From Gekko japonicus (taxonomy: Eukaryota), in the NCBI RefSeq assembly GCF_001447785.1, contig NW_015166455.1:17286-81285 (forward strand): a DNA stretch of 64,000 nucleotides, in the 5' to 3' direction. Made by a program: the position numbers and the translations under genes. Positions 1,641 through 57,903 of this stretch are shown here, in pieces. The notes under the pieces were generated by a model, which was given only the letters and a program-made list of their open reading frames with translations, was not told the origin of the DNA and did no database searches. Each line of letters opens with the position of its first letter. The first letter of the stretch is position 1.

Positions 1641-3774
1641 TGGAGGAAGGAGGACAGCCATTGTAAAACAGTCCCCTGTATCCCAGCATTGGCACTAATG
1701 TACTAATGGTCTTCCCATCAGGTTTGAGATCATTCCACAATATTGACTTGGATGTCAAGAATTGGGCTTACATTGATTTGGATACTGTTTGCCAGCAGTG
1801 GTCTGAGGCAGGGTCAGCACATTCCTTCTCCCCAATGTATGTTGGTCCTCTAAACAAATATGGAGTGGGCACCCCATAGAGGATTTCCATGGATAAAAGA
1901 AGGGGTGATTTTCGGCCAATCCCCCCTTCCCATGGCAGACATCCTGTCCCTCAGGAGCACCATTTCAGGGGCATTTTGTACCATTACTGGGAGAGACAAG
2001 AAAGGTTTTTTGTTTTCTTTTTAATTTTAAGCAGGGTCCGAGCCATGTTGTGTGCATAAAGCTAGACTTAACATTTCAAGTATGCCAGGAGGAAGTGGTT
2101 TGAGAGCAATCACCTCAGAATACAACTGAGTTGTGTTCTCATTAATTCCACAGAAAGTCTGTGCAGCCTCTGCAAGCTGTGCAAAGAGGGAAGAAAAATA
2201 CTGAGACATAACTTAGGATGGAGACCAGGGTTGCCAACCTCCAGGAGGGACCTGGAAATCTCCTAGAATTGCAACTGCTCTCCAAACAACAGAGATCAGT
2301 TCCCATAGAGGAAATGGCTGCTTTGGAGGTGGACTCTATGGTGTCATACCTTACTGAGGTCCCTCCCCAGGATCCACCACCAAATCACCAGGAATTTCCT
2401 AACCCAAAGTTGGCAGCCCTAGTGGAGAGTATACTGGAGGAATTATTCACTATCTTCAGTAGAATTTACCTGGAGAATAGGGTTCCTATACATTTTTGTT
2501 TTGTTTTATTTTCGTTTGTAGAATGCCTTTTTCACTGACACCCAAGGCAGGCTACAATAAAAAAAGAACACAATAACAACACTATAACAATACAATAAAC
2601 TATATAATAAATCTGGATTAAAAATTATGAAACAATACAATCAAACAATATAATGCATATAATGTACAATGTAATGAAACGGCCTGATTTTTTTCTCTGT
2701 GGGGTGATCAGTGAGGCTTGGATGTGGAAAGAATGGTAGAATCAGAGCCACTGAAAGGGAACGAGTATGAAGGAATGCCTGTACACAATATTATTTCCCG
2801 TGGCCTAATCTCTTAGAAAAGGTAGCTTTATCAAAGCTGTTCATATGAGTTTGGCATTTAACTTTTCATGGCTAGGTGGTGTGGAGAGTATATTAATAGG
2901 ATCATCGAGCAAAACGGCTTATTTTATTGTATCTGTAAGTTGGCAGTGAACAAGGTTGTACATAAAACCGATGATCCTTTTGCTGCCTTCAGCACAAAGA
3001 ATATGCTCTTCTCCTGCAAGAGCATCAAGATGTCCTTTTGGACACATGCCCCACAATGTCACCATAAAAGCAATATATGGGACATAAAATGGTGAGTGTT
3101 TTCCACTTTTAATCAACGTTTTCAGACGCTAGAATTTTACGTAGAATTTATTCTGCAGTTCAGATGGCAAATTCTAACCTGGCTCCATAAAATGGGCATT
3201 AAGAATTAATTGGACTTTACTCAGAACTTAAAAAAAAAAATCTGGAAGAATCTCAGTGTGTTATAAATAGGGATACCAACAGGAAAAAAAAATAGAGTGT
3301 CATCCTATGTTTTATGAAATTTGTTTGTTTGTGGTTGTTTGTTTGTTTGTTTGTTTTTGTCAGCCAGTTGCCAGAAATGCAGGGGATATTTCCCCCCTTG
3401 AATGAGTTTTTTAAAGCTGCATGCCAGAATTGAACAGACAGCTTTAGTATAGGACTCTGGATTCACTAAGCTCCATCCTCAGAACTGCCAAAACCTACTG
3501 GATCCTGCCGCTAATCCATCCCAAGCCTCTGGATAATACCCCTGAATCCACACAAAACAAGCTGTGTCCCAAATCTGCTCTGAGCACTGTCTAGGTTTGC
3601 CAACTCCAGGTTGGGAAATGCCTGGAGATTTTGGAGGTGGAGCCTCAGTAGGGCATGGTTTGGGGAGGGGAGGGACTTCAGTGGGGTCCCAAGAGAGGAG
3701 ATCCTCCAACTAGCTTAGATACATAGAGTATAATATCATAGAGTATAATATCATAGAGCTTCCCCCCCCCCCAG

Positions 3775-4305
3775 GAGGCTGGTTTCACATAGGAGATCCC
3801 CACGACTGTCACTCGGAAGAGTGCATAGTAACCACCACCCCGTCTTTAGTTCAGAATGGGACATATCCCCCTATAAGTTGCAGAAGAAAAGGGAAAAGAA
3901 GAAGTAAAGGCTGAAGGACTCTGAATTTGTGTCTTTGAAGATTTTGGGTTTTGGGATGATTGAGGGTACTGTTACTAGACAGTTAAATTTAAACTTTAAG
4001 GGAAAATGGCTATAAGTTTATAAAGGATCAACGATGTGAAGACTCGATGTATCTAAGCTAGTTGGAGGATCTCCTCTCTTGGGTTTTTAGTTAGTAGTGG
4101 GTTCTTTACTTTCTCCTATATATGTAGTTTCCCCCCTTCCCTGTTGTAGTTTTTTGTAGTGGAAAAAATCAATAAAAAATCCCCTCCGGGGGCTTAAAAA
4201 AAAAAAAGAATGAGACATATCGATTTTGCTGCTGCAACACCGACTTGTGCAATGTCAACTTCACGGAGAACTTTCCACCGGATCCTACTGATGCAATGCC
4301 TTTCA
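3775..4305 (+). pseudogene. BMPR2: Isolated copy of BMPR2 exon 3 (extracellular cysteine box), split by an L1-type insertion
   Basis: 3775-3867 + 4222-4305 = 177 nt encoding (G)[58 protein letters not shown](S); matches recalled human [51 protein letters not shown]; acceptor CCCCAG ends at 3774, donor GTGAGT starts at 4306; phase 1-1. Confidence 0.9.
3868..4206 (+). mobile_element. 5'-truncated poly(A) retroposon (L1-like 3'UTR) inserted in the BMPR2 exon copy
   Basis: 15-bp TSD AGAATG(G/A)GACATATC at 3853-3867 and 4207-4221; AATAAA at ~4171; poly(A) tail. Confidence 0.8.
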
Positions 4306-4634
4306 GTGAGTTGGACCTTTACAGCTCGTTCCATAATTCCAAAGCAGCCATTTTCTCCAGGTAAACTGATCTCAGTTGTAATCTCAGGAGATCTCCAGCC
4401 ACCACCTGGAGGTTGGCAATACTAGCATGGTCTCAAGGCTCTGTTCACTGCTGGATATCCCAGGCTGATTGCCTTGATTGCATTGCTTTTTAAAGTATGT
4501 AGTCTGCTTTGAGTCTCAGCAAGAAAGAAGGGTCATTACATTAATACAGTTAAGGAAATCAATAAATACATGTAGATAATGATCATAATGCTCCTGCTCA
4601 GTTCTGTAGGGAAGAATTTTATGATTGGAATGGG

Positions 4635-4636
<2 letters not shown>

Positions 4637-4677
<41 letters not shown>
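4637..4677. repeat. (GT)n microsatellite
   Basis: Direct inspection. Confidence 0.95.
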
Positions 4678-5871: not shown

Positions 5872-6080
5872 TGACTAGGAATCAAGCCTGTTGTAGGAAT
5901 GAAGACAACGGGAGCTAGTCTGGCCTCCCGACTGCAGGCCACCGGGGCCCCCAGTCGCCTGAGTCCAAGGCTGTCGGAACGGGCCCCTGCCGCACAGTCG
6001 AGGCACCAGCGGGTCAAGCTGGCCAGCTTGTTGGGCCCGCCTCGCACGCTCGAGGCATCGTCATCGGCCGGGGCTCACCC
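5872..6080 (-). mobile_element. Possible Helitron 3' end fragment
   Basis: ACTAG (CTAG|T on minus) next to imperfect hairpin CCTGTTGT...ACAACGGG, followed by a GC-rich body. Confidence 0.4.
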
Positions 6081-6887
6081 TCTCCAGGCTCCATCTCTCA
6101 AATATCCAGGAATTTCCCACCTGGAGTTGGCAACCCTATCTCCTTCCCAGCCAAGCATCAACCTACCTTCACTTCCCCCTCACTGATCAGCTGTCCACCC
6201 CCCCACCAACAGCCCCCACCATGCTCTGAATCCCTGACTGCCACATCACCTTGGCTGTCATGGGGGGGCTATCTCAGCAGGGTATAAGGACACAGAGTCC
6301 ATCATTTTCTCCAGGGGAACTGATCTCTGCCATCTGGAGAGAAGTTGTAATTCCGAGTGTTCTCCAGCCCTCACCTGGAGATTGGCAACAATGGTTTTCC
6401 AGGAGGAAAATTAGTCTTTCTCTGCAATGGGGACCAAAGCAGATAACATCATTCTCCTCTCCCCCTTTTGACTTGCACANNNNNNNNNNNNNNNNNNNNN
6501 NNNNNNNNNNNNNNNNNNNNNNNNNNNNNNNNNNNNNNNNNNNNNNNNNNNNNNNNNNNNNNNNNNNNNNNNNNNNNNNNNNNNNNNNNNNNNNNNNNNN
6601 NNNNNNNNNNNNNNNNNNNNNNNNNNNNNNNNNNNNNNNNNNNNNNNNNNNNNNNNNNNNNNNNNNNNNNNNNNNNNNNNNNNNNNNNNNNNNNNNNNNN
6701 NNNNNNNNNNNNNNNNNNNNNNNNNNNNNNNNNNNNNNNNNNNNNNNNNNNNNNNNNNNNNNNNNNNNNNNNNNNNNNNNNNNNNNNNNNNNNNNNNNNN
6801 NNNNNNNNNNNNNNNNNNNNNNNNNNNNNNNNNNNNNNNNNNNNNNNNNNNNNNNNNNNNNNNNNTCCTTGGGCTACCCCCTCCCTT

Positions 6888-7440
6888 TGTTACTGTGCAG
6901 AGCGGGGGAGACTATGTGGTCAGAGCACAACGCAGATTATTAGCCCAAATAAAAGATTTTATTTAAGTATTTTCACAGTTATGGAGCGCACACACACACT
7001 AAATAAGGCACAGCTGTAGGAGTGAGGACACACTATGAACCCACATGGGCATAAATCTACAGGGGTTAAACGCCATCCCCTACACACCAGATTCTGGCTC
7101 TGTGCTCCAGCCTCTCTCTCTCTCTGGCCAAAGAGAGCAGGGAAACTTCCATTCATTCCCCAGTCCAGCCGACTGTGGAGTGGCTGAATTTCTGCTGCCT
7201 CCCAGGGTTCCCCCACGTCTGTGGCTTCTGGCCTGGACAACCTGGTCAGCGCAGGCAGCAGAAGCCTTTCCTAACCTCCTGTAGGACGAAGACTGCCTCC
7301 ACCCTGTATGGGCTTCAGTCTATATTGATGCTGCCCTGCCCCTTGGGACAGTCCCTCTTTTCCCGCTCTTTTTGGCCTTGGGGCAGCTGGGAATTGTAGT
7401 CCAGCAGATGAGAAAGCCCCATTCAGCCCAGTGAGTGACA
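6888..7440. mobile_element. LTR-like segment
   Basis: TGTTAC...GTGACA ends and AATAAA/TTTATT motifs; no TSD match found. Confidence 0.3.
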
Positions 7441-11119: not shown

Positions 11120-11345
11120 TAGGGTTGCCAGGTCTGGGTTGGAAAATACCTGGAGACTTTGGGGGTGGATCCAGGAGAGGGTGGGGTTTGGGGATGGGAG
11201 GGGCCTCAGCATGGTCCAATGCCACAGAGTCCACTCTTCAAAGCAGCCATTTTCTCCAGGGGAGCTGATCTCTGTCGGCTGGAGAGTGGAGATCAGTTGT
11301 AAAAGCGGGAGATCCCCAAGCCCCACCTGGATGCTGGAAACCCTA
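11120..11345. mobile_element. hAT MITE (common short TAGGGTTGCCA family)
   Basis: TIRs TAGGGTTGCCAG / CTGGAAACCCTA; TSD CACGCAGC/TAGGCAGC (6/8); related copies at ~2227-2421, 6080-6390, 41760-41986, 57025-57427. Confidence 0.8.
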
Positions 11346-13708: not shown

Positions 13709-14263
13709 TATACCCTACTATTGGAGAGTAAAAAGTGTGCATCTCTGGGAATGAGTTGCTAAAGTGTTAAGCCCTAGATGCCAATTGAGATTTTGAACCT
13801 CTAATCTCAGGTTGGGAGGGGGATTATTGTAGAGGTTCTGGTGACATATTGTTCTGAATCCAGAGAGGGTATAGACCATCTTGTGGTTTGTTGTTTAATG
13901 TACTGCAAAAGTACAGGCTTCCTCTCATCCCTGGACTGGCTTGAGGGGCAAAAACCTGTACATGGCGGCAGCAATGCTGTACATACAGGATTCCCTCTCA
14001 TCCCTAGACAGGTGTGGGTGGGCTATCCTGTATACAATATTTTTATACGCACACATACACACTTGGTGTTTTTAATGTTTGAAATATTTTATATTTGTTT
14101 TTATGGTTGCTGCTCTGGGGAGCCTTGGTCAAAAGGCAACAGGCTCCACCCTCAATTGTCCAGGAATCTCCTAACCTGGATTTGGGAACCCTGTATTGCT
14201 GGCAGCAATTGTGATCCTCAAGTGGTGGAGGAGCTTTTCCTTAAAGTATGAATGAGCTGTGAG

Positions 14264-29732: not shown

Positions 29733-30776
29733 CCTCCCTTCAAGAACGCAGTGGATGTCACGACAGCCCTGGTGGAATGAGCCCGCACCGGGCCTGGCAG
29801 CGGCTGCCTCGCCAGTAGGTAGCAGAGTTCTATCAGACCTACGATCCACTTGGATAGACATTGGGCAGTGATTGGAGTGCCCACACGAGGTGTAGCGTAA
29901 GAGACAAACAGCTGTGACGTTTGTCTGGTGGAGCGTGTCCTATTCAGATAGAAGAGGAGGGCCCGCATCACGTCCAAATTGTGCATAAGTCTGTCTTCCT
30001 GTGATTTCGGGTCAGGATAGAAATAAGGGAGGAAGACTTCAGACTGCAGATAGATTTCAGAGACCACTTTCGGCAAGAATGAAATGTCCGGCACCAGGCA
30101 GACACCATCTGGGAGGAAGGATAAGTATGGTGAGTCATGCCGGAAAGCCAGGAGTTCACCGACTCGCCTGGCCGAGGTGACTGCGACGAGGAATGCCATC
30201 TTCCACGCCAGGAGCTTCAGCTGACAGGTGGNNNNNNNNNNNNNNNNNNNNNNNNNNCTGGCGCAGGACCAAGGGAAGGTCCCATAAAGCTGTTGGAGCT
30301 TTGACTGGAGGGTATAAACGTAGCAAACCTTTCAGGAAATGTTTGGTAACCGGATGCGAAAACAGAGTGCAACCATCAATATGAATGTGGAAGGCCGATA
30401 ACGCGGCCAAGTAAACTCTTAACGAGGAGTGGGTAAATCCCGAGTCAGCCAGGGATAGGATGAACATAAAAACCTTATCGAGGCCAGCAGTTGTGGCTGT
30501 AAAGGTGTCAGTGTCCAAAAAGGAACAGAAGCATTTCCACTTGTAATCGTACGACTGATGTGTGGACGCTTTACGAGAGTTCATAAGGACCTCAATCACA
30601 CGAAACGAGAACGCCGGGCCTGTATCCGCCACGCAGTCAGCTTGAGCTGCGGAAGGTTGTGGTGGAGCACAGGCGACTGAGACAGGTGGAGCAAGTCTGG
30701 AGACGGTGGGAATTGGTGATACATCCCAGCCGACAGTTCCAGGACCGTGGAGAACCACAGCTGCCTTGGCCACCAA
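29733..30776 (-). pseudogene. DIRS tyrosine recombinase, spans an N-gap, C-terminally truncated
   Basis: SRKASTHQSY..KW, WDLPLVL, LVAVTSARRVGEL (catalytic R), FLPKV, AHSTR (H-x-x-R); similarity stops before the W and catalytic Y. Confidence 0.9.
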
Positions 30777-30790
30777 GGCGCTATGAGGAG
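30596..30790 (-). pseudogene. DIRS pol C-terminal remnant (methyltransferase-like domain)
   Basis: LIAPWWPRQLWF...PDLL...LKLTAWRI is typical of the DIRS ORF2 end; overlaps the start of YR. Confidence 0.75.
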
Positions 30791-30859
30791 ATGCACCAAG
30801 AGTTCAGACATCTTTTCCCACAAGGTGTACTGGTATCGACTCATACAGGCAAGATAGTT

Positions 30860-32557
30860 TTACACCTTCACGGCCAACGCTCCCGTTGAGTAGAAGCGGC
30901 GGCCAAAGGCATCCAACTTCTTGCCTTTCCTATCTGAAGGAGCGGAATGTGACTTTTTCAACTTGGATGACGAGGTGACGACTAAGGAGTTTGGTTGTGG
31001 ATGGGAGAGGAAGAACTCTGCCGCAGTTCGCTGAATGTGGTACATGTGGTCTAACTTTTTTGTAGAGACGGGGGCGGACGACGGTTTGTGCAAGACTGAC
31101 GACATTGGAAGCTCGACGACTGAGGACATGTCCAGTTGGACGATATCATAGAGAGAATCCGTAGATTGAGGATCCGTTTGAACAATTGACAGTCCCAATG
31201 CGTGGGCCATACCTTTTATGAGGTCGGTGTATGACAACAAGTTATCCGACGGGGATATTGGGAGGTTCTGAAACACGTCGGTATTGGGAGACGAATTATC
31301 TGGCGACGTTGGGGCTTCGGAAGGCTCGGTATCGGAACCAGATTCCGAAGGCTCTGAAGACTCGGGTTCCCCAGCTGGGGCAGGTCGACGAGGAGATGGA
31401 GCAGGCGGCTGGATTGGTGCAGCCGGTGTGTGCTCCAAATGCTTCCGAGGAGGAGGTTGGACAGAAGATGTTCCCGACAGTGGAACATTGTCCGGTTGAG
31501 AGGGACGAGAGACCGTAGCAGATGGAGAACGAGACCTGTGGGAAGATCGACAGGAGTATCTGTCCCAGTCAGTGTATCCCGTAAGGCCGAGCCAAGGCAT
31601 AGGAGGATGGTAAGGACCGTACAGGTAACGGAACTGCCTTTCATCCCAAGACATCGGAGGCGGCATGCACGACCTCGGGGAATGGCTCCTCGACCTTGGA
31701 CGACGTGGGGAAAACCTTGACGGAAGAGCATACGTGGCCCTTCTACAGTCAAAGGCGTCGATATCGACAGACTCAGGCGACAAACGGGGAGGCCGATGCT
31801 CCGCACTGGATCTTGAGCATCGATGCCGTCGGCCATCGGTGTCGGGTGGCTCTGAGACGATCGAAGCCGACGAGCTTGTTGGACCAGGAGAAGACTCTGC
31901 ACCCAGCTGGTGACTTACGAGTTCCATTTGGTCGATATCGTACAAGGCTGTCTCCACCTGATGGTCTGGAGAGTCTAGCACAAGTACCGTAGTCTCAGAC
32001 ACGACCTGGTTCACCGGTATCGATGCAATCGGTGTCGAACCAGTCGGTATCGATGGCGTCGATGGTGGAGGAAGGGCCGGAGCTGCTGGCACAGAGTCCT
32101 TCTTAGCAGGCTTCGCAGCCTTGACCACCTTCTGCGTCGCCACTGCAGGGTTGGACTTCTTGGCCTTCTTAGCAGGGGTGGACGCTGTGGAAGGAACGTT
32201 TGGTACCTTAGGTTTTGGTTTCGACCTCTCGGTATCGGAAACAGACTTAGCCTTCGACGTCGACGGTTTCAAAGCCGATGCGTCGGTGGCGGAAGACATA
32301 GCGACGGATGAAGTGACTGACGGGTCAGCCATCGGGTGAAGCGCTTTCTCCAAGAGGAAAACTCTCAAGCGTGCCGCTCTGTTCTTCCGAGTTTGGTTTG
32401 AAAATGGCGCACAATGTTCACAGGAGTCTGGATTGTGGGTCTCCCCAAGACAGAAAATACAGTACTTATGACCGTCTGGAGGAGCCAATTTACTTCCACA
32501 AGTACGACAACGATTGAAAAATCCCCACTTCTTCAACTTTTTTTTCTTTTTCTCCAT
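30860..32557 (-). CDS. DIRS ORF1 (gag-like): N-terminal Cys/His finger, low-complexity linker, LAP2alpha-like domain
   Basis: 565 aa open; CRTC..DGHKYCIFCLGETH..SCEHC; HPQPNSLVV and PSDRKGKKLDAFGRRFY motifs; ends at an in-frame TAA followed by NYLACMSRYQYTLWEK. Confidence 0.85.
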   Translation of the reverse strand: MEKKKKKLKKWGFFNRCRTCGSKLAPPDGHKYCIFCLGETHNPDSCEHCAPFSNQTRKNRAARLRVFLLEKALHPMADPSVTSSVAMSSATDASALKPSTSKAKSVSDTERSKPKPKVPNVPSTASTPAKKAKKSNPAVATQKVVKAAKPAKKDSVPAAPALPPPSTPSIPTGSTPIASIPVNQVVSETTVLVLDSPDHQVETALYDIDQMELVSHQLGAESSPGPTSSSASIVSEPPDTDGRRHRCSRSSAEHRPPRLSPESVDIDAFDCRRATYALPSRFSPRRPRSRSHSPRSCMPPPMSWDERQFRYLYGPYHPPMPWLGLTGYTDWDRYSCRSSHRSRSPSATVSRPSQPDNVPLSGTSSVQPPPRKHLEHTPAAPIQPPAPSPRRPAPAGEPESSEPSESGSDTEPSEAPTSPDNSSPNTDVFQNLPISPSDNLLSYTDLIKGMAHALGLSIVQTDPQSTDSLYDIVQLDMSSVVELPMSSVLHKPSSAPVSTKKLDHMYHIQRTAAEFFLSHPQPNSLVVTSSSKLKKSHSAPSDRKGKKLDAFGRRFYSTGALAVKV

Positions 32558-35930: not shown

Positions 35931-37152
35931 AACTAGGCTTCAACAGTACTGCCGGACGTACAAGCTGGGTTTCGAAGAGGTAGAGGAACTAGAGATCAAA
36001 TTGCCAACATTCGCTGGATTATGGAGAAAGCAAGAGAGTACCAGAAAAACATCGACTTCTGCTTCATTGACTATGCTAAAGCCTTTGACTGTGTGGATCA
36101 CAACAAACTATGGCAGGTCCTTAAAGAGATGGGAGTACCAGACCACCTCACATGTCTCTTGAGAAACCTGTATAAGGGTCAAGAAGCGACAGTTAGAACC
36201 GGATATGGAACAACTGATTGGTTTAGCATAGGAAAAGGAGTACGACAAGGATGTATATTGTCACCTTGCTTATTTGATATATATGCAGAGTACATCATGC
36301 GAAACGCTGGCCTGGATGAATCACAAGTAGGAATTAAGATTTCTGGGGAAAAGATCAACAACCTCAGATATGCAGACGATACCACTCTAATGGCAGAAAG
36401 TGAAGAGGACCTAAAGAGCCTCTTGCTCAGGATAAAAGAGGAGAGCGCAAAAGTGGGCTTGAAGCTCAACATCAAAAAAACTAAGATCATGGCATCCAGC
36501 CCCATCACTCCTTGGCAAATAGAAGGGGAAGTCGTAGAAGTAGTGACAGACTTCACATTCCTGGGATCCCAGATCACCACAGACGGTGACAGCAGCCATG
36601 AAATTAAAAGACGCCTGCTCCTTGGGAGGAAAGCGATGGCGAACCTAAACAGCATGATAAAAAGTAGAGACATCACCCTGCCAACAAAAATCTGCATGGT
36701 CAAAGCAATGGTATTCCCAGTAGTCATGTATGGCTGCGAGAGTTGGACTATAAGGAAGGCCAAGCACCGAAGAATAGATTCTTTTGAACTGTGGTGCTGG
36801 AGAAGACTCTTGAGAGTCCCTTGGACTGCAAGAAGATCAAATGAGTCAATCCTAAAATAAATCAACCCGGACTGTTCCCTGGAAGGCCAGATAATGAAAC
36901 TGAAGCTCAAATCCTTTGGCCACCAAATGAGAAGGGAGCACTCACTGGAGAAGACCCTGATGCTGGGAAAGATTGAAGGCCAAAGAAGACGGGGACGGCA
37001 AAGGATGAGATGGTTAGACAGTGTCATAGATGCAACGAACATGAAATTGAGCCAACTTCAGAGGACGGCGAAAGACAGGAGGGCCTGGCGGGATCTGGTC
37101 CATGGGGTCGCGAAGAGTCGGACTCGACTGTGCGACTGAACAACAACAACAA
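35931..37152 (+). mobile_element. Bov-B (RTE) LINE 3' 1.2 kb with RT core
   Basis: ORF 36021-36860 with QGCILSP and YADD; one GAA>TAA stop at 36858 (GAA in the 21185 copy); (CAA)n tail. Confidence 0.96.
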
Positions 37153-42027: not shown

Positions 42028-42671
42028 TCTATATATCTAATACCCAAGTCGCCCCGTCTGTGCGGATCGCTAAATCCGCGCTCCGGGGCGACCTGGGGGG
42101 CAGGGAGATTTTTGGGCACACGTGGGGAGGTCCCCACGTGTGCACAAAAATGCTAAACCTTGGAAAAAAATTCGGGGGGATGTTTAAATCCCCCCGAAAC
42201 TCACAGAGCGTCCCCTGCGCACGCGCAGGGAACTCTCTGCGAACGCCGCCGCCGCCGTTTGAAAGGCGAGCGGCGAGCAAGGAGGGGGGCCCTCGCTTTG
42301 GAGCGAGGGGGGGAGAGAGCAGCGAGGCCTCACTTTGGAGGGGGGGGAAAGGGTAGAGATTTACCTCCTCCACAGTGAGCAGCGGCTCCTCCTGAAGCAA
42401 CAAGAAGTTCTGGAGCCGGCCTCGCCGCGGGCGGGCAGGCGAAGACCGGCCTCGCCGCCGCCTCGGTGCCGGGCGAGAGGGCAGACCGNNNNNNNNNNNG
42501 AGCCGGGCGGGGGGGAGGACCAGCCTCGCCGCGGCCGCCTCCGCCTCGGAGTCGGGCGGGGGGGAAGACCGGCCTTGCCGCTGCTGCCGCCGCGGGGAGA
42601 TCGAGCGGGGGGGGGGTTGGAGGAGACGGAGCTCTTCTCCCCCACCCAAGTATTGTGGGTCCCCTTACTTG
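42028..42671 (+). mobile_element. Candidate non-autonomous Helitron, GC/CpG-rich
   Basis: A|TC 5' end; 3' hairpin ACCCA-agtattg-TGGGT, then CTTG|T; no TSD or TIR. Confidence 0.6.
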
Positions 42672-53734: not shown

Positions 53735-54198
53735 CAGGGGTCATTTCGTAGAAAAAGAGCTAGGGGAACTCATTAGCATAACTCATTAGCATATGCCACA
53801 CCCCCTGACATCACCGGAAGTGTGTCATAAGGCCACACCCCCTGACATCACCGGAAATGTGTCATAAGGCCACACACCCCGCCCCCAACGGTCCCGGCCG
53901 CCACTGCCGGCCTTGCAGCTCCACTGCCGAGCCCCATGAGGGTGGTGGACCTGCAAGGCTGGCGGGAGTGCAAGGAAGCCCCGCGTAGGCCCTCCCTGGC
54001 CCCAGGCAGGCAGGGGTGGGGAGAGGCAGGGAGGAAGCAACTTACCCTCCCTCTTCTCCTGCCTCCTCCTGGCTGAATGAGGGCCGGAAGTGGGGCGGCC
54101 GGAAGCAGGGGGTGGGGCTTCATCATGTGCCCCGCCCCTCAGTACCTCACCCCGGGGGAACTGCGTTCCCCCGCATTCCCCTCCCGAAATGACCTCTG
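53735..54198 (+). mobile_element. hAT MITE (CAGGGGTCATTTCG TIR)
   Basis: Perfect TSD ATTGCAGG. Confidence 0.92.
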
Positions 54199-54334
54199 AT
54201 TGCAGGTGAGATTTCATGGACCTTGGCTAACGAACTACAAACCAGGCAATTTTCATCACCAATTTAGGTTTGTGGCCCAGTTTGTGCTCATCCCTAATAC
54301 TGATTCTTTCCCATGCCTCCTGATTGTCCCAGCT

Positions 54335-55312: not shown

Positions 55313-55767
55313 CAGGGGTCGTTTCTTAGAAAAAGAGCTAGGGGAACTCATTAGCATATGCCACACCCCCTAACATCACCGGAAGTGTGTCATAAGGCCA
55401 CACCCCCTGACATCACCGGACGTGTGTCATAAGGCCACACACCCCACCCCCAACGGTCCCGGCCACCGCTGCTGGCCTTGCAGCTCCACTGCCGAGCCCC
55501 ATGAGGGGCCCGGCGGTGGACCTGCAAGGCCGGCGGGAGTGCAAGGAAGCCCCGCAAAGGCCCTCCCTGGCCCCAGGCAGGCAGGGGTGCGGAGAGGCAG
55601 GGAGGAAGCAACTTACCCTCCCTCTTCTCCTGCCTCCTCCTGGCTGAATGTGGGCCGGAGGTGGGGGGGCCGGAGGCAGGGGGCAGGGCTTCGTCATGTG
55701 CCTTGCCCCCCCGTACCTCACCTGGGGGAACTGCGATCCCCCGCGATCCTCCCCGAAATGACCTCTG
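55313..55767 (+). mobile_element. hAT MITE, close sister of 53735-54198
   Basis: Perfect TSD CTCTTGTC. Confidence 0.92.
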
Positions 55768-57903
55768 CTCTTGTCTAATGTGTGTTGACTATAGGGTTGC
55801 CAGGTCCACAGCATCTTAGGGAATTATAGGGTGGGCTGTGATGTCACCAAATAGCAGTACTAATGATGGCAATTCCACACACCACCAAGTACTGTTCCAC
55901 GTGTGTAGTCACAATAACTTTGAGGAGATTGATTGTTTACCATACTAATCTCCCCCCCCCCCCACATACCATGATAATTGACTACACAGAATGTGCAACT
56001 GATGGTTCACATGATTTATTTTAATTTGGTTTTGAGATTGTATCAGAAGAATTACCTTGTGCTATGTCTTGCACACTTTCTCTGAGCATAAGCAGACAGT
56101 GAGGAATGACATTTTCATGCTTCCACTTGCACAAGAACTGTTAGACACATAAAAATCTTCCACAGGAAGATTTCCCCCAGATATTTCCACCCATCATCAC
56201 GCTCTTGGTTTGGGAAACAAAATATTTTGTAATTGTAATTATTTTCTCATTGTAACCATCTTGAAGGCCTCTTGTCAGAGAGAAAGTCAGCATGGAAAGA
56301 CTTTAAATATATTGATAATCAATAAGTAGACACTGTGTTCCTGTCACCTCAATGTATTGCTATGCACTGCTCCTGAGACTGGCAGAGTTGCTCGGAAAAC
56401 TCTGTATATGAGCAGTCTTTCAGCATTCAAAACAGGTTTCAAGGCTTTCCTTCAAGAAGTCCTATAGATTGCATTTATCACACTGCTTTGCTGGAGATAC
56501 GTTACATTTATCACACAGCTTTTATGTGTGATAAATGGAATGCGTCGTTCATAAAACAGATCTATACTTCTCAAAAGGCATGATTATGGGCAGTGAGATG
56601 GAGAAGATTAATCTTTTTGTGCTGTGGCATTATCCTTGTGCTTTTGGACCGAAGGGATCGAGCTTTCTTGTTTTAGTATCTTGTATAGTTTTGTAAGGTT
56701 TCTCATGGTTTGTGGACATTGGTTGGATTTTGCAGAAGGATTAGTAGTGTATGTTTGCAATGGGGAATAACATTTTGGGTGGGAAGTGGGTGATTGGAGC
56801 ATAACTGAAGCCTCCCATGCAGCTATTAAGGGTCAGTGTGCTGTAAGTGACTTATTTTATGCATGTCATAGCTTGAGTGAATTGTCCTAATTAAGAGTGC
56901 ATTAAAATGTGGAGAGGAGCACACATACTGTGGTTAAATCTCCTTGAGCAGGGATCTGTGCTTTCACAATGCAACCAAGTGATGTCATCTGAAATTGTTT
57001 ACAGGGAGTGGATTGGATTCAAACTAGATTTGCCAGCTCTGGATTAGTAAATTCCTGGAGATTTGAGGGTGGAGCCTAAGGTGGGTTTTTGGAGAGGAGA
57101 GGGACCTCAGTAGGGTATAGAGTCCGCTCCCTAAAGCTGGGAATAGTGGGGAGAGCATTTGTAAATCCAGGAGTTCTCCAGGCCTAATATTAGGGTTGCC
57201 AGCCTCTAGGTGGGGTCTAGAGATCTCTCGCTATTACAACTGACAATCCAGACAGCAGAGATCAATTCTCTAGGACAAAAAGGACAGCAGAGATCAATTC
57301 TCTAGGACAAAATGGCTGCTTTGGAGGGTGGACTCTATGGCATTGTACCCTGCTGAAGTCCCTTCTTTCCAGGAATTTTCCAACCCAGAGGTGGAAACCC
57401 TACCTCACATGGAGGCTGGAAACCCTAACCTAAAGGTTGTTTTTTTCCCCTAATGGTGGAGGCTTCATCTGGTGGAAGAGGCAGGTACTATTAGAGGAAG
57501 AATTCTTGTACCAGAGAAAAGCTCCATCTTCAGTGGAATAGAGGTTTTGGATCTACCAAATAATTCCCAGAGGTTTGTGTAGTGATGTTAGGATGTGCAG
57601 TGAGAATTCTCAGGGTTGTTGTGAGGACAAAATGGAGGAGTGTGGGATAATGCATGCCACCTTGATCTGTGTGGATAATGCACGCCACCTTGAACTATGT
57701 GAATATAGATGGGATAAAAATGTACTCAATGATAATAAAAGCAATTAATCAAGAAATGGATCCAACCCATCCCATTTGTAATTATTGTTATAACTAATAC
57801 AAATTGGGGGGAAAGCCCAGCTTTTGGATTTCGTGTTCAGGAAGGTCATCTGGTTCGACCAGACTCCGTATTGAGTTAATGAGTGGCAGTACACACACAC
57901 TAA

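Follow-up and report, generated by a model that had tools for sequence, protein, structure and literature searches.

How does a single coding exon, with the splice signals on both of its sides, come to lie in the core of a small DNA transposon? This question is raised by a locus of Gekko japonicus, located in a stretch of 64,000 nucleotides of contig NW_015166455.1 (assembly GCF_001447785.1) that is called the window below and from whose first letter all positions are counted. At 3592-4424, this window holds a copy of a miniature inverted-repeat transposable element (MITE) with hAT-type features, the core of which is interrupted by foreign DNA including exon 3 of the BMPR2 gene. A first-pass annotation, made from the letters alone, had described the locus as a candidate Pack-TIR, that is a transposon with terminal inverted repeats (TIRs) enclosing a captured gene fragment, and had regarded it as a possible vehicle for exon shuffling. 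The analysis reported here indicates that the locus is probably a single-copy Pack-TIR that arose independently of transposition, by the filling of a gap where an old MITE had broken, and that was left afterwards to neutral decay.

The interrupted element and its foreign block

The left terminus of the interrupted MITE reads TAGGTTTGCC, the right one GGCAATACTA. Both termini are bracketed by the two copies of an 8-bp target-site duplication (TSD), gcactgtc at 3584-3591 and gcatggtc at 4425-4432, which agree at 6 of 8 positions. The left arm (3592-3688, plus strand), with its TIR TAGGTTTGCCAAC, corresponds to family positions ~1-98 of another copy found at 11120-11345, to which it is 75% identical, and is ~20% off the in-window consensus of the family. 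The right arm (4338-4424, plus strand), which ends in the TIR GTTGGCAATACTA, corresponds to positions ~120-226 of the same reference copy and is ~16% diverged from the consensus. Since the arms are collinear and enclosed by the 8-bp TSD, both belong to a single insertion, of which they form the ends.

This element belongs to a family that was delineated by self-BLAST of the window and by alignments, with a unit of ~200-225 nt that covers ~2% of the window and a core characterized by the motifs CATAGAG, TCCACCC and TCCAAAGC. Besides the interrupted copy, self-BLAST detected three full copies, at 11120-11345 (plus strand), 2226-2421 (minus) and 57191-57402 (minus), and partial ones at 6076-6137, 6260-6389, 14140-14192 and 57026-57116. 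An 8-bp TSD flanks all four full copies, each time with 6 matches out of 8; the sum of 24/32 (P ~4e-9) contrasts with the 5-13/32 obtained in shifted registers. The TIRs of hAT elements are short and begin with a YARNG motif, and the termini of all copies of this family (TAGGG or TAGGT at one end, CCCTA or ACTA at the other) conform to it. The 8-bp TSD and the YARNG-type termini assign it to the hAT superfamily, as the first-pass annotation had said. A Tc1/mariner interpretation of the termini, based on the dinucleotide TA, was rejected because the 8-bp register provides a far better fit. No autonomous hAT transposase partner with the same termini was seen in the 64-kb window, in which no test was aimed at one. 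Two odd arrangements of this family were also observed. In one, a minus-strand 5' arm (6076-6137) is separated by 120 nt from a plus-strand 3' part (6260-6389); in the other, a lone 5' arm at 57026-57116 faces the full inverted copy at 57191-57402, which contains an internal tandem duplication. Both may be further rearranged cores.

The DNA foreign to the family extends from 3759 to 4337 (579 nt, a later retroposon included), and ~200-225 nt of it are derived from BMPR2. The first-pass annotation had placed this block inside a hAT MITE, and only small corrections of coordinates were needed. To its left, the remnant of the MITE core (3722-3758, plus strand; repeat search and alignment) consists of CATAGAGTATAATAT twice in tandem followed by CATAGAG, and the left breakpoint lies after 3758. 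The block itself, entirely on the plus strand, begins at 3759-3774 with a pyrimidine tract and splice acceptor that can be read directly (CTT, 11 C and AG). The first 92 nt of exon 3 (codons 83-113) follow at 3775-3866, as established by translation and a PDB match. The next segment, 3867-4220, can again be read directly and comprises a poly(A) retroposon (3867-4206) and the second copy of its own 14-nt TSD (4207-4220). The last 85 nt of the exon, with the CCCxxDxCN box, occupy 4221-4305 (translation and PDB match), and comparison of read-throughs assigns to 4306-4337 the GTGAGT donor (4306-4311) and ~20-30 nt of BMPR2 intron 3. The two parts of the exon add up to 177 nt in phase 1-1, with two codon bases at the start and one at the end, and neither contains a stop codon. 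The edges of the block are uncertain by a few nucleotides. The origin of the pyrimidine tract, putatively the end of intron 2, is partly ambiguous, as its run of C may include the TCCACCC of the MITE; on the other side, TCCATAAT (4328-4335) may be MITE-derived, which places the right end between ~4324 and 4337. The MITE sequence missing or blurred at the junction amounts to at most ~7 nt (TCCACCC).

The identity of the exon was investigated by searching its two parts (3775-3866 and 4221-4305) separately, each as its own query. The 30-residue translation of the first part matches in the PDB only BMPR2 extracellular-domain chains (E 2.6e-11, residues 54-82 of 2hlq_A). The 28-residue translation of the second part also matches BMPR2 (E 9e-10, residues 88-111 of 7ppc_I; in 2hlq_A, residues 83-100), clearly better than the activin receptors 2A and 2B (E 0.7-1.6 in the PDB). 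The two parts are therefore contiguous on BMPR2 (54-82, then 83-100 of 2hlq_A). Searches of 1.84 billion representative proteins, together with a word index, produced short open reading frames (ORFs) that read through the real exon 3 in many vertebrates; the query with the second part of the exon returned such exon-3 read-through fragments only, and not a full-length BMPR2 among these representative proteins. The similarity of these ORFs to one another and to the window copy ends exactly at AG and GT, which confirms the boundaries of the exon. These are AG/GA GGC TGG at 3773-3782 (codon 83, phase 1), where the ORFs that read through the real exon 3 of other species have LLFT/G, and A/GTGAGT at 4305-4311 (near codon 140, phase 1), the stroke marking in each case the splice boundary. 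In the human numbering, exon 3 is c.248-418. The window copy is of sauropsid type (TPSL.QNGTY, PPDPTD) and its closest read-through ORF, P0002, has the substitution Glu93Asp in common with it. Beyond the donor, the intron read-through of P0002 (SKSLDFF) and that of the window (SELDLY) are alike over ~6 codons only, and this likeness indicates that at least ~19 nt past the donor are derived from the intron. Taken together, these comparisons support the identification of the captured sequence as BMPR2 exon 3, and the extracellular exon of 177 nt and phase 1-1 that the first-pass annotation had recognized is thus confirmed.

The locus presents several of the features by which Tan et al. (2021) delimit Pack-TIRs. 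Parts of the same element are found on both sides, each with at least 10 bp of the terminals; the internal non-transposon sequence falls within 100-5000 bp; and it is not an intronless retrocopy, as it consists of a single exon with AG, GTGAGT and intron-like flanks. The first-pass annotation had used these flanks to set aside a retrocopy. A copy of processed mRNA is indeed excluded, and a patch templated by unspliced RNA still fits. Such a patch could have been produced without any relation to the transposon, if a break fell by chance in the MITE and was repaired by end joining with a free DNA fragment or with cDNA of unspliced BMPR2 pre-mRNA, in the manner of the class 2 templated insertions. 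The lack of a TSD at the block, the microdeletion of at most 7 nt and possible added C residues are junction features listed for this class (PMC5110952), whose patches are enriched for transcribed sequence and apparently RNA-derived (PMC5110952). An exon with short intron flanks would suit nascent RNA as well as DNA. On the other hand, in view of the ~2% of the window covered by the family, a chance hit at the centre of a MITE is a priori unlikely, and a second templated scar 70 bp away, described below, points instead to local fragility. We consider this origin rather improbable; unless the parent sequence is known, its outcome looks the same as that of gap filling.

Decay of the exon copy and the search for a BMPR2 gene

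The first cysteine codon of the copy (Cys84, at 3777-3779) reads GGC and encodes glycine, which, together with the lack of any other BMPR2 exon in the window, had already led the first-pass annotation to conclude that this is not the functional locus. The present comparison extends this observation. Relative to the sauropsid-type peptides, the window copy carries ~9 private substitutions, Cys84Gly and Ser119Asn among them, and has lost one Pro codon; Ser119Asn and this loss both fall in the second part of the exon. Both Cys84 and Ser119 are invariant in all 18 aligned vertebrate sequences, from fish to primates, and five sauropsid-type exon-3 peptides with differing intron read-throughs are identical to one another over 60 residues. 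In addition, the frame of the exon runs into a stop 15 codons inside the retroposon. With a conserved cysteine lost and in-frame stops brought in by the retroposon, the copy can no longer be used as a shuffling module and is a dead pseudo-exon.

The rest of the gene was searched for by tblastn against the whole window, using as queries turtle exons 1-3 (P0019), a primate BMPR2 sequence of 453 aa (P0025), which includes the transmembrane segment and the greater part of the kinase, and two partial fish sequences (P0014 and P0022). Only the two parts of exon 3 were matched, all other hits having E > 0.2. None of the exons 1, 2 and 4-11 was therefore found in the 64 kb, which cover 3.7 kb upstream and 59.6 kb downstream; in particular, exons 2 and 4 do not flank the block. 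This search covered the window except for 386 masked N at 6480-6865, ~2 kb downstream of the element. Owing to this run, two long ORFs in the ORF list, 6251-6943 and 6468-7019, are artefacts; elsewhere in the window there are two shorter runs, at 30232 (26 N) and at 42489 (11 N). No host gene was identified around the element by Pfam. Simple repeats are present on both of its sides, (GTTT)n upstream at 3325-3358 and (GT)n downstream at 4640-4677.

These results support the conclusion that the window is not a functional BMPR2 locus. A reader could still suppose that the window touches the real gene or that the junctions are an assembly chimera, as the exon boundaries are correct, the splice signals are intact, the upstream view is limited to 3.7 kb and 386 downstream bases are masked. 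This supposition would have to accommodate the absence of all other exons from the 64 kb, the loss of a disulfide cysteine and the splitting of the exon by a retroposon with in-frame stops. Moreover, the intron sequences end ~16 nt and ~30 nt from the exon and give way to the two halves of one TSD-bracketed MITE, and a misassembly would not yield a retroposon with its own TSD, nor the inverted patch described in the next section. Such an explanation is accordingly very hard to believe.

Later scars, relative ages and the probable course of events

Two further events have left their marks on the locus. The first is the retroposon at 3867-4206, a putative L1, with an insertion of 340 nt with an AATAAA signal ~21 nt ahead of its poly(A) tail and a 14-nt TSD (3853-3866 and 4207-4220, 13/14 identical), which splits the exon between codons 113 and 114. 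Self-BLAST found no further copy or lookalike of it in the window. The second event was overlooked by the first-pass annotation, which mentioned neither the inverted repeat nor the tandem duplication that compose it. A repeat search and a base-by-base comparison show that the segment 3688-3729 is, on the minus strand, a copy of 4042-4083 inside the retroposon: the inverted repeat is 42 nt long and 98% complementary, with 37 nt exact and 312 nt between its arms. This 37-nt segment is absent from the other family copies, which read GGGTATAATGCCATAGAG at that spot. As it breaks the MITE arm there, 3688-3729 is the copy and the retroposon its likely template. The inverted copy ends in an imperfect microhomology, CAT(A/C)GAGT, of which CATAGAG is also the MITE's own motif. 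It adjoins a 15-nt tandem duplication (3722-3751), in which the two CATAGAGTATAATAT repeats are 100% identical and which occupies the place where the family consensus has GTATAATGCCATAGAG only once. Together, the inverted copy and the duplication bear the hallmark of a break that was closed by end joining with a small templated insertion, an outcome known for polymerase theta (PMC4912351, PMC5068794). Twin priming was also considered as the origin of the inverted copy and was rejected, since the copy lies 130 nt outside the TSD of the retroposon.

The relative ages of these components can be estimated from their divergence. The arms of the interrupted MITE show 30 mismatches at 169 consensus-supported sites (16-20%), the other family copies are 13-15% off the in-window consensus, which gives a range of 13-20% for the family in the window, and all four MITE TSDs have changed at 2 of 8 positions. 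The exon copy shows ~10 changes at ~135 non-synonymous sites (~7%); nearly all of them are private to it, because the real exon barely changes. The divergence of the arms differs from that of the exon with a Fisher p of 0.01. The TSD of the retroposon at 13/14 and the inverted patch at 37/37 complete this series. These values form a coherent order, in which insertion of the MITE was followed by exon capture, then by the retroposon and then by the inverted patch; the last two steps must have this sequence, the patch being later than the retroposon and the retroposon later than the exon block. This order implies that the MITE was in place and ageing by the time the exon came in.

The following scenario would account for these observations. 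A double-strand break would have struck an old and immobile hAT-type MITE, already in place, close to its centre. During its repair, DNA synthesis would have switched template and copied into the break ~200-225 nt of BMPR2, namely the end of intron 2, exon 3 in full and the first nucleotides of intron 3, for a loss of at most 7 nt of the MITE. Neutral decay of the copy would have removed Cys84, Ser119 and one codon and introduced ~7 other private substitutions. An L1-type reverse transcription would have split the copy after codon 113 by inserting the polyadenylated retroposon of 340 nt. Finally, a later and small episode of error-prone repair in the MITE core would have left there an inverted copy of 37 nt of the retroposon and a duplication of 15 nt. 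The sequence shows the anatomy of the locus, the identity of the exon, the origin of both arms in one element, the decay and the order of the steps; from these traces we infer both the repair mechanism and the lack of later transposition. The occurrence of two scars of templated repair within 70 bp of the core is as expected for a fragile site, and this MITE family may have in its core a hotspot of repeated breakage and patching. The tip of the MITE hairpin was examined as a possible site of the break and was rejected: the breakpoint lies not in a loop but within an internal stem (TTTGGTGGTGGA / TCCACCTCCAAA), on its 3' side. This check was based on the fold of the copy at 2228-2420 (z -3.96), the fold of 11121-11344 being not significant (z -0.89).

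A different history would be that of a truly mobile Pack-TIR, in which a hAT MITE captured the exon elsewhere and the chimera was then transposed to the present site, so that further copies would be expected. The element has kept both of its TIRs and its 8-bp TSD, which is what a hAT transposase needs, and multicopy Pack-hAT elements are known in frog and alligator (PMC8277862). Yet the exon copy seems younger than the arms and the TSD that surround it, a difference that counts against mobilisation, and the divergence of 13-20% among the family copies makes recent activity unlikely. No second copy of the foreign block was found in the window by blastn, and animal Pack-TIRs are multicopy in only 4 of 281 unique cases, the remaining 98.6% being single-copy (PMC8277862). 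Transposition of the finished chimera is thus unlikely, and the exon-shuffling vehicle proposed by the first-pass annotation is not supported, as nothing shows that it was mobilised. It is likewise unlikely that the chimera, or its precursor still free of the retroposon, was mobilised into several MITE+BMPR2-exon copies with different TSDs, or that the frame-symmetric exon was once spliced into a host transcript. If mobilisation were nevertheless true, the locus would represent a transposition-dependent, exon-carrying Pack-hAT in a squamate.

Several points also weigh against gap filling as the origin of the block. The parent gene is missing from the 3.7 kb upstream and 59.6 kb downstream, in contrast with the 57% of published cases that lie within 15 kb of their parent (PMC8277862). 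The evidence on copy number covers the 64-kb window apart from its 386 masked bases. Lastly, the comparison of ages between arms and exon is suggestive rather than decisive, being based on an in-window consensus of 3-6 copies and on protein-level counts for the exon.

Other mobile elements were observed at a distance from the locus. A 279-aa ORF at 36021-36857 (plus strand) contains a reverse-transcriptase domain (Pfam RVT_1, E 5e-26) and is 84% identical to a sequence of Podarcis muralis, 82% to one of Varanus komodoensis and 76-81% to those of bovids; this distribution over squamates and ruminants suggests a LINE of BovB type and, together with the sauropsid type of the exon, agrees with a squamate host. 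An intact ORF of 564 aa at 30860-32554 (minus strand) has no Pfam match and a weak Atlas match to a chordate cluster named 'putative GAG protein' (0.76). After it comes, at 30156-30773 (minus strand), an ORF of 205 aa with a sub-threshold match to the phage-integrase SAM-like domain. This pair of ORFs (30156-32554), located in a GC-rich block of 4 kb, is possibly a tyrosine-recombinase (DIRS-like) retroelement. Two GC-rich segments at 53825-54217 and 55413-55814 (both minus strand), 1.6 kb apart, have near-alike ORF translations (…GGRRRGRVSCFLPASPHPCLPGAREGL…) and look like repeat copies rather than exons.

Comparison with known captures and templated insertions

The most relevant reference is the survey of Tan et al. 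2021 (Nat Commun 12:4280, PMC8277862), in which 370 Pack-TIRs, 208 of them hAT, were described in 100 animal genomes. Their hosts are relics with a median divergence of 18.3% and the median insert measures 224 bp; the median gap is 4.6% of the element, the breakpoints are biased to the interior and microhomology accompanies two thirds of the cases (PMC8277862). Exon sequence is present in 13.4%, and the human ERP44 case comprises a coding exon and, on either side of it, part of the adjoining intron (PMC8277862). In primates, the orthologous site of the outgroup holds a plain element in 94% of the cases, which led to the view that most Pack-TIRs arise by transposition-independent gap filling (PMC8277862). 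The gecko locus resembles these elements, ERP44 included, in its old hAT-type host, in the conservation of both termini, in an insert of ~200-225 nt, in its internal breakpoint and tiny gap, in the capture of exon and intron at the DNA level and in being apparently single-copy. It differs from the published set by its insert split by a retroposon. That survey accepted only cases with a length ratio of 80-120% to a unique parent that is at least 90% identical and has no transposons on its flanks; with the retroposon included, the ratio here would be ~2.6 and would fail the filter on length, and the identity is perhaps below the one on parents too.

The same survey reported 38 Pack-TIRs in the American alligator, 25 in frog and 0 in Anolis (PMC8277862), so that the statement of the first-pass annotation that such captures are little described in reptiles was too strong. 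The zero of Anolis (anoCar2) is explained by an annotation that contains only 77 TIR elements (PMC8277862, supplementary file 4); the large animal survey therefore missed squamates only through poor transposon annotation. Our search of the literature on transduplication in squamates gave no relevant report. The locus of Gekko japonicus provides in this respect a clean example: a coding exon, complete and frame-symmetric, was copied at the DNA level, with both splice signals, into a DNA transposon, and such captures are the raw material of exon-shuffling models. Its stacked scars also give a relative time-line, and they favour the view of old MITE cores as fragile sites, patched with ectopic sequence.

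Other systems are comparable in part. Plant Pack-MULEs likewise carry a gene fragment between the TIRs of a non-autonomous DNA transposon, with the difference that they are Mutator elements with a TSD of 9-11 bp, and not hAT elements with one of 8 bp, and that they are often multicopy (36% in rice) and mobilised, of which there is no sign here. The hobo/hAT elements of Anolis carolinensis take up filler DNA (Novick et al. 2011, PMC3014272) and constitute another case of extraneous DNA in a lizard element of the hAT superfamily; their filler consists mostly of other transposons and the composites were amplified, whereas here one old copy contains a coding exon of the host. The block also resembles the class 2 insertions of Onozawa and Aplan (2016, PMC5110952) by its patch from elsewhere, its microdeletion and its lack of a TSD. 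The retroposon at 3867-4206, with its TSD and its AATAAA before the tail, has the features of their class 1, defined by a TSD and an AATAAA 10-30 nt before the tail (PMC5110952). As for the 37-nt inverted copy, its template 312 nt away and the short duplication beside it recall a snap-back or in-trans insertion by polymerase theta (PMC4912351, PMC5068794). These class 2 and polymerase-theta cases come from human cells and mutagenised worms. With its 37 nt, the inverted copy is long for a scar of polymerase theta, and the enzyme behind the inverted copy cannot be inferred from its sequence. On every feature that can be tested, the present case fits the class of single-copy Pack-TIRs: dead and single on present evidence, it illustrates a known process and calls for no new mechanism.

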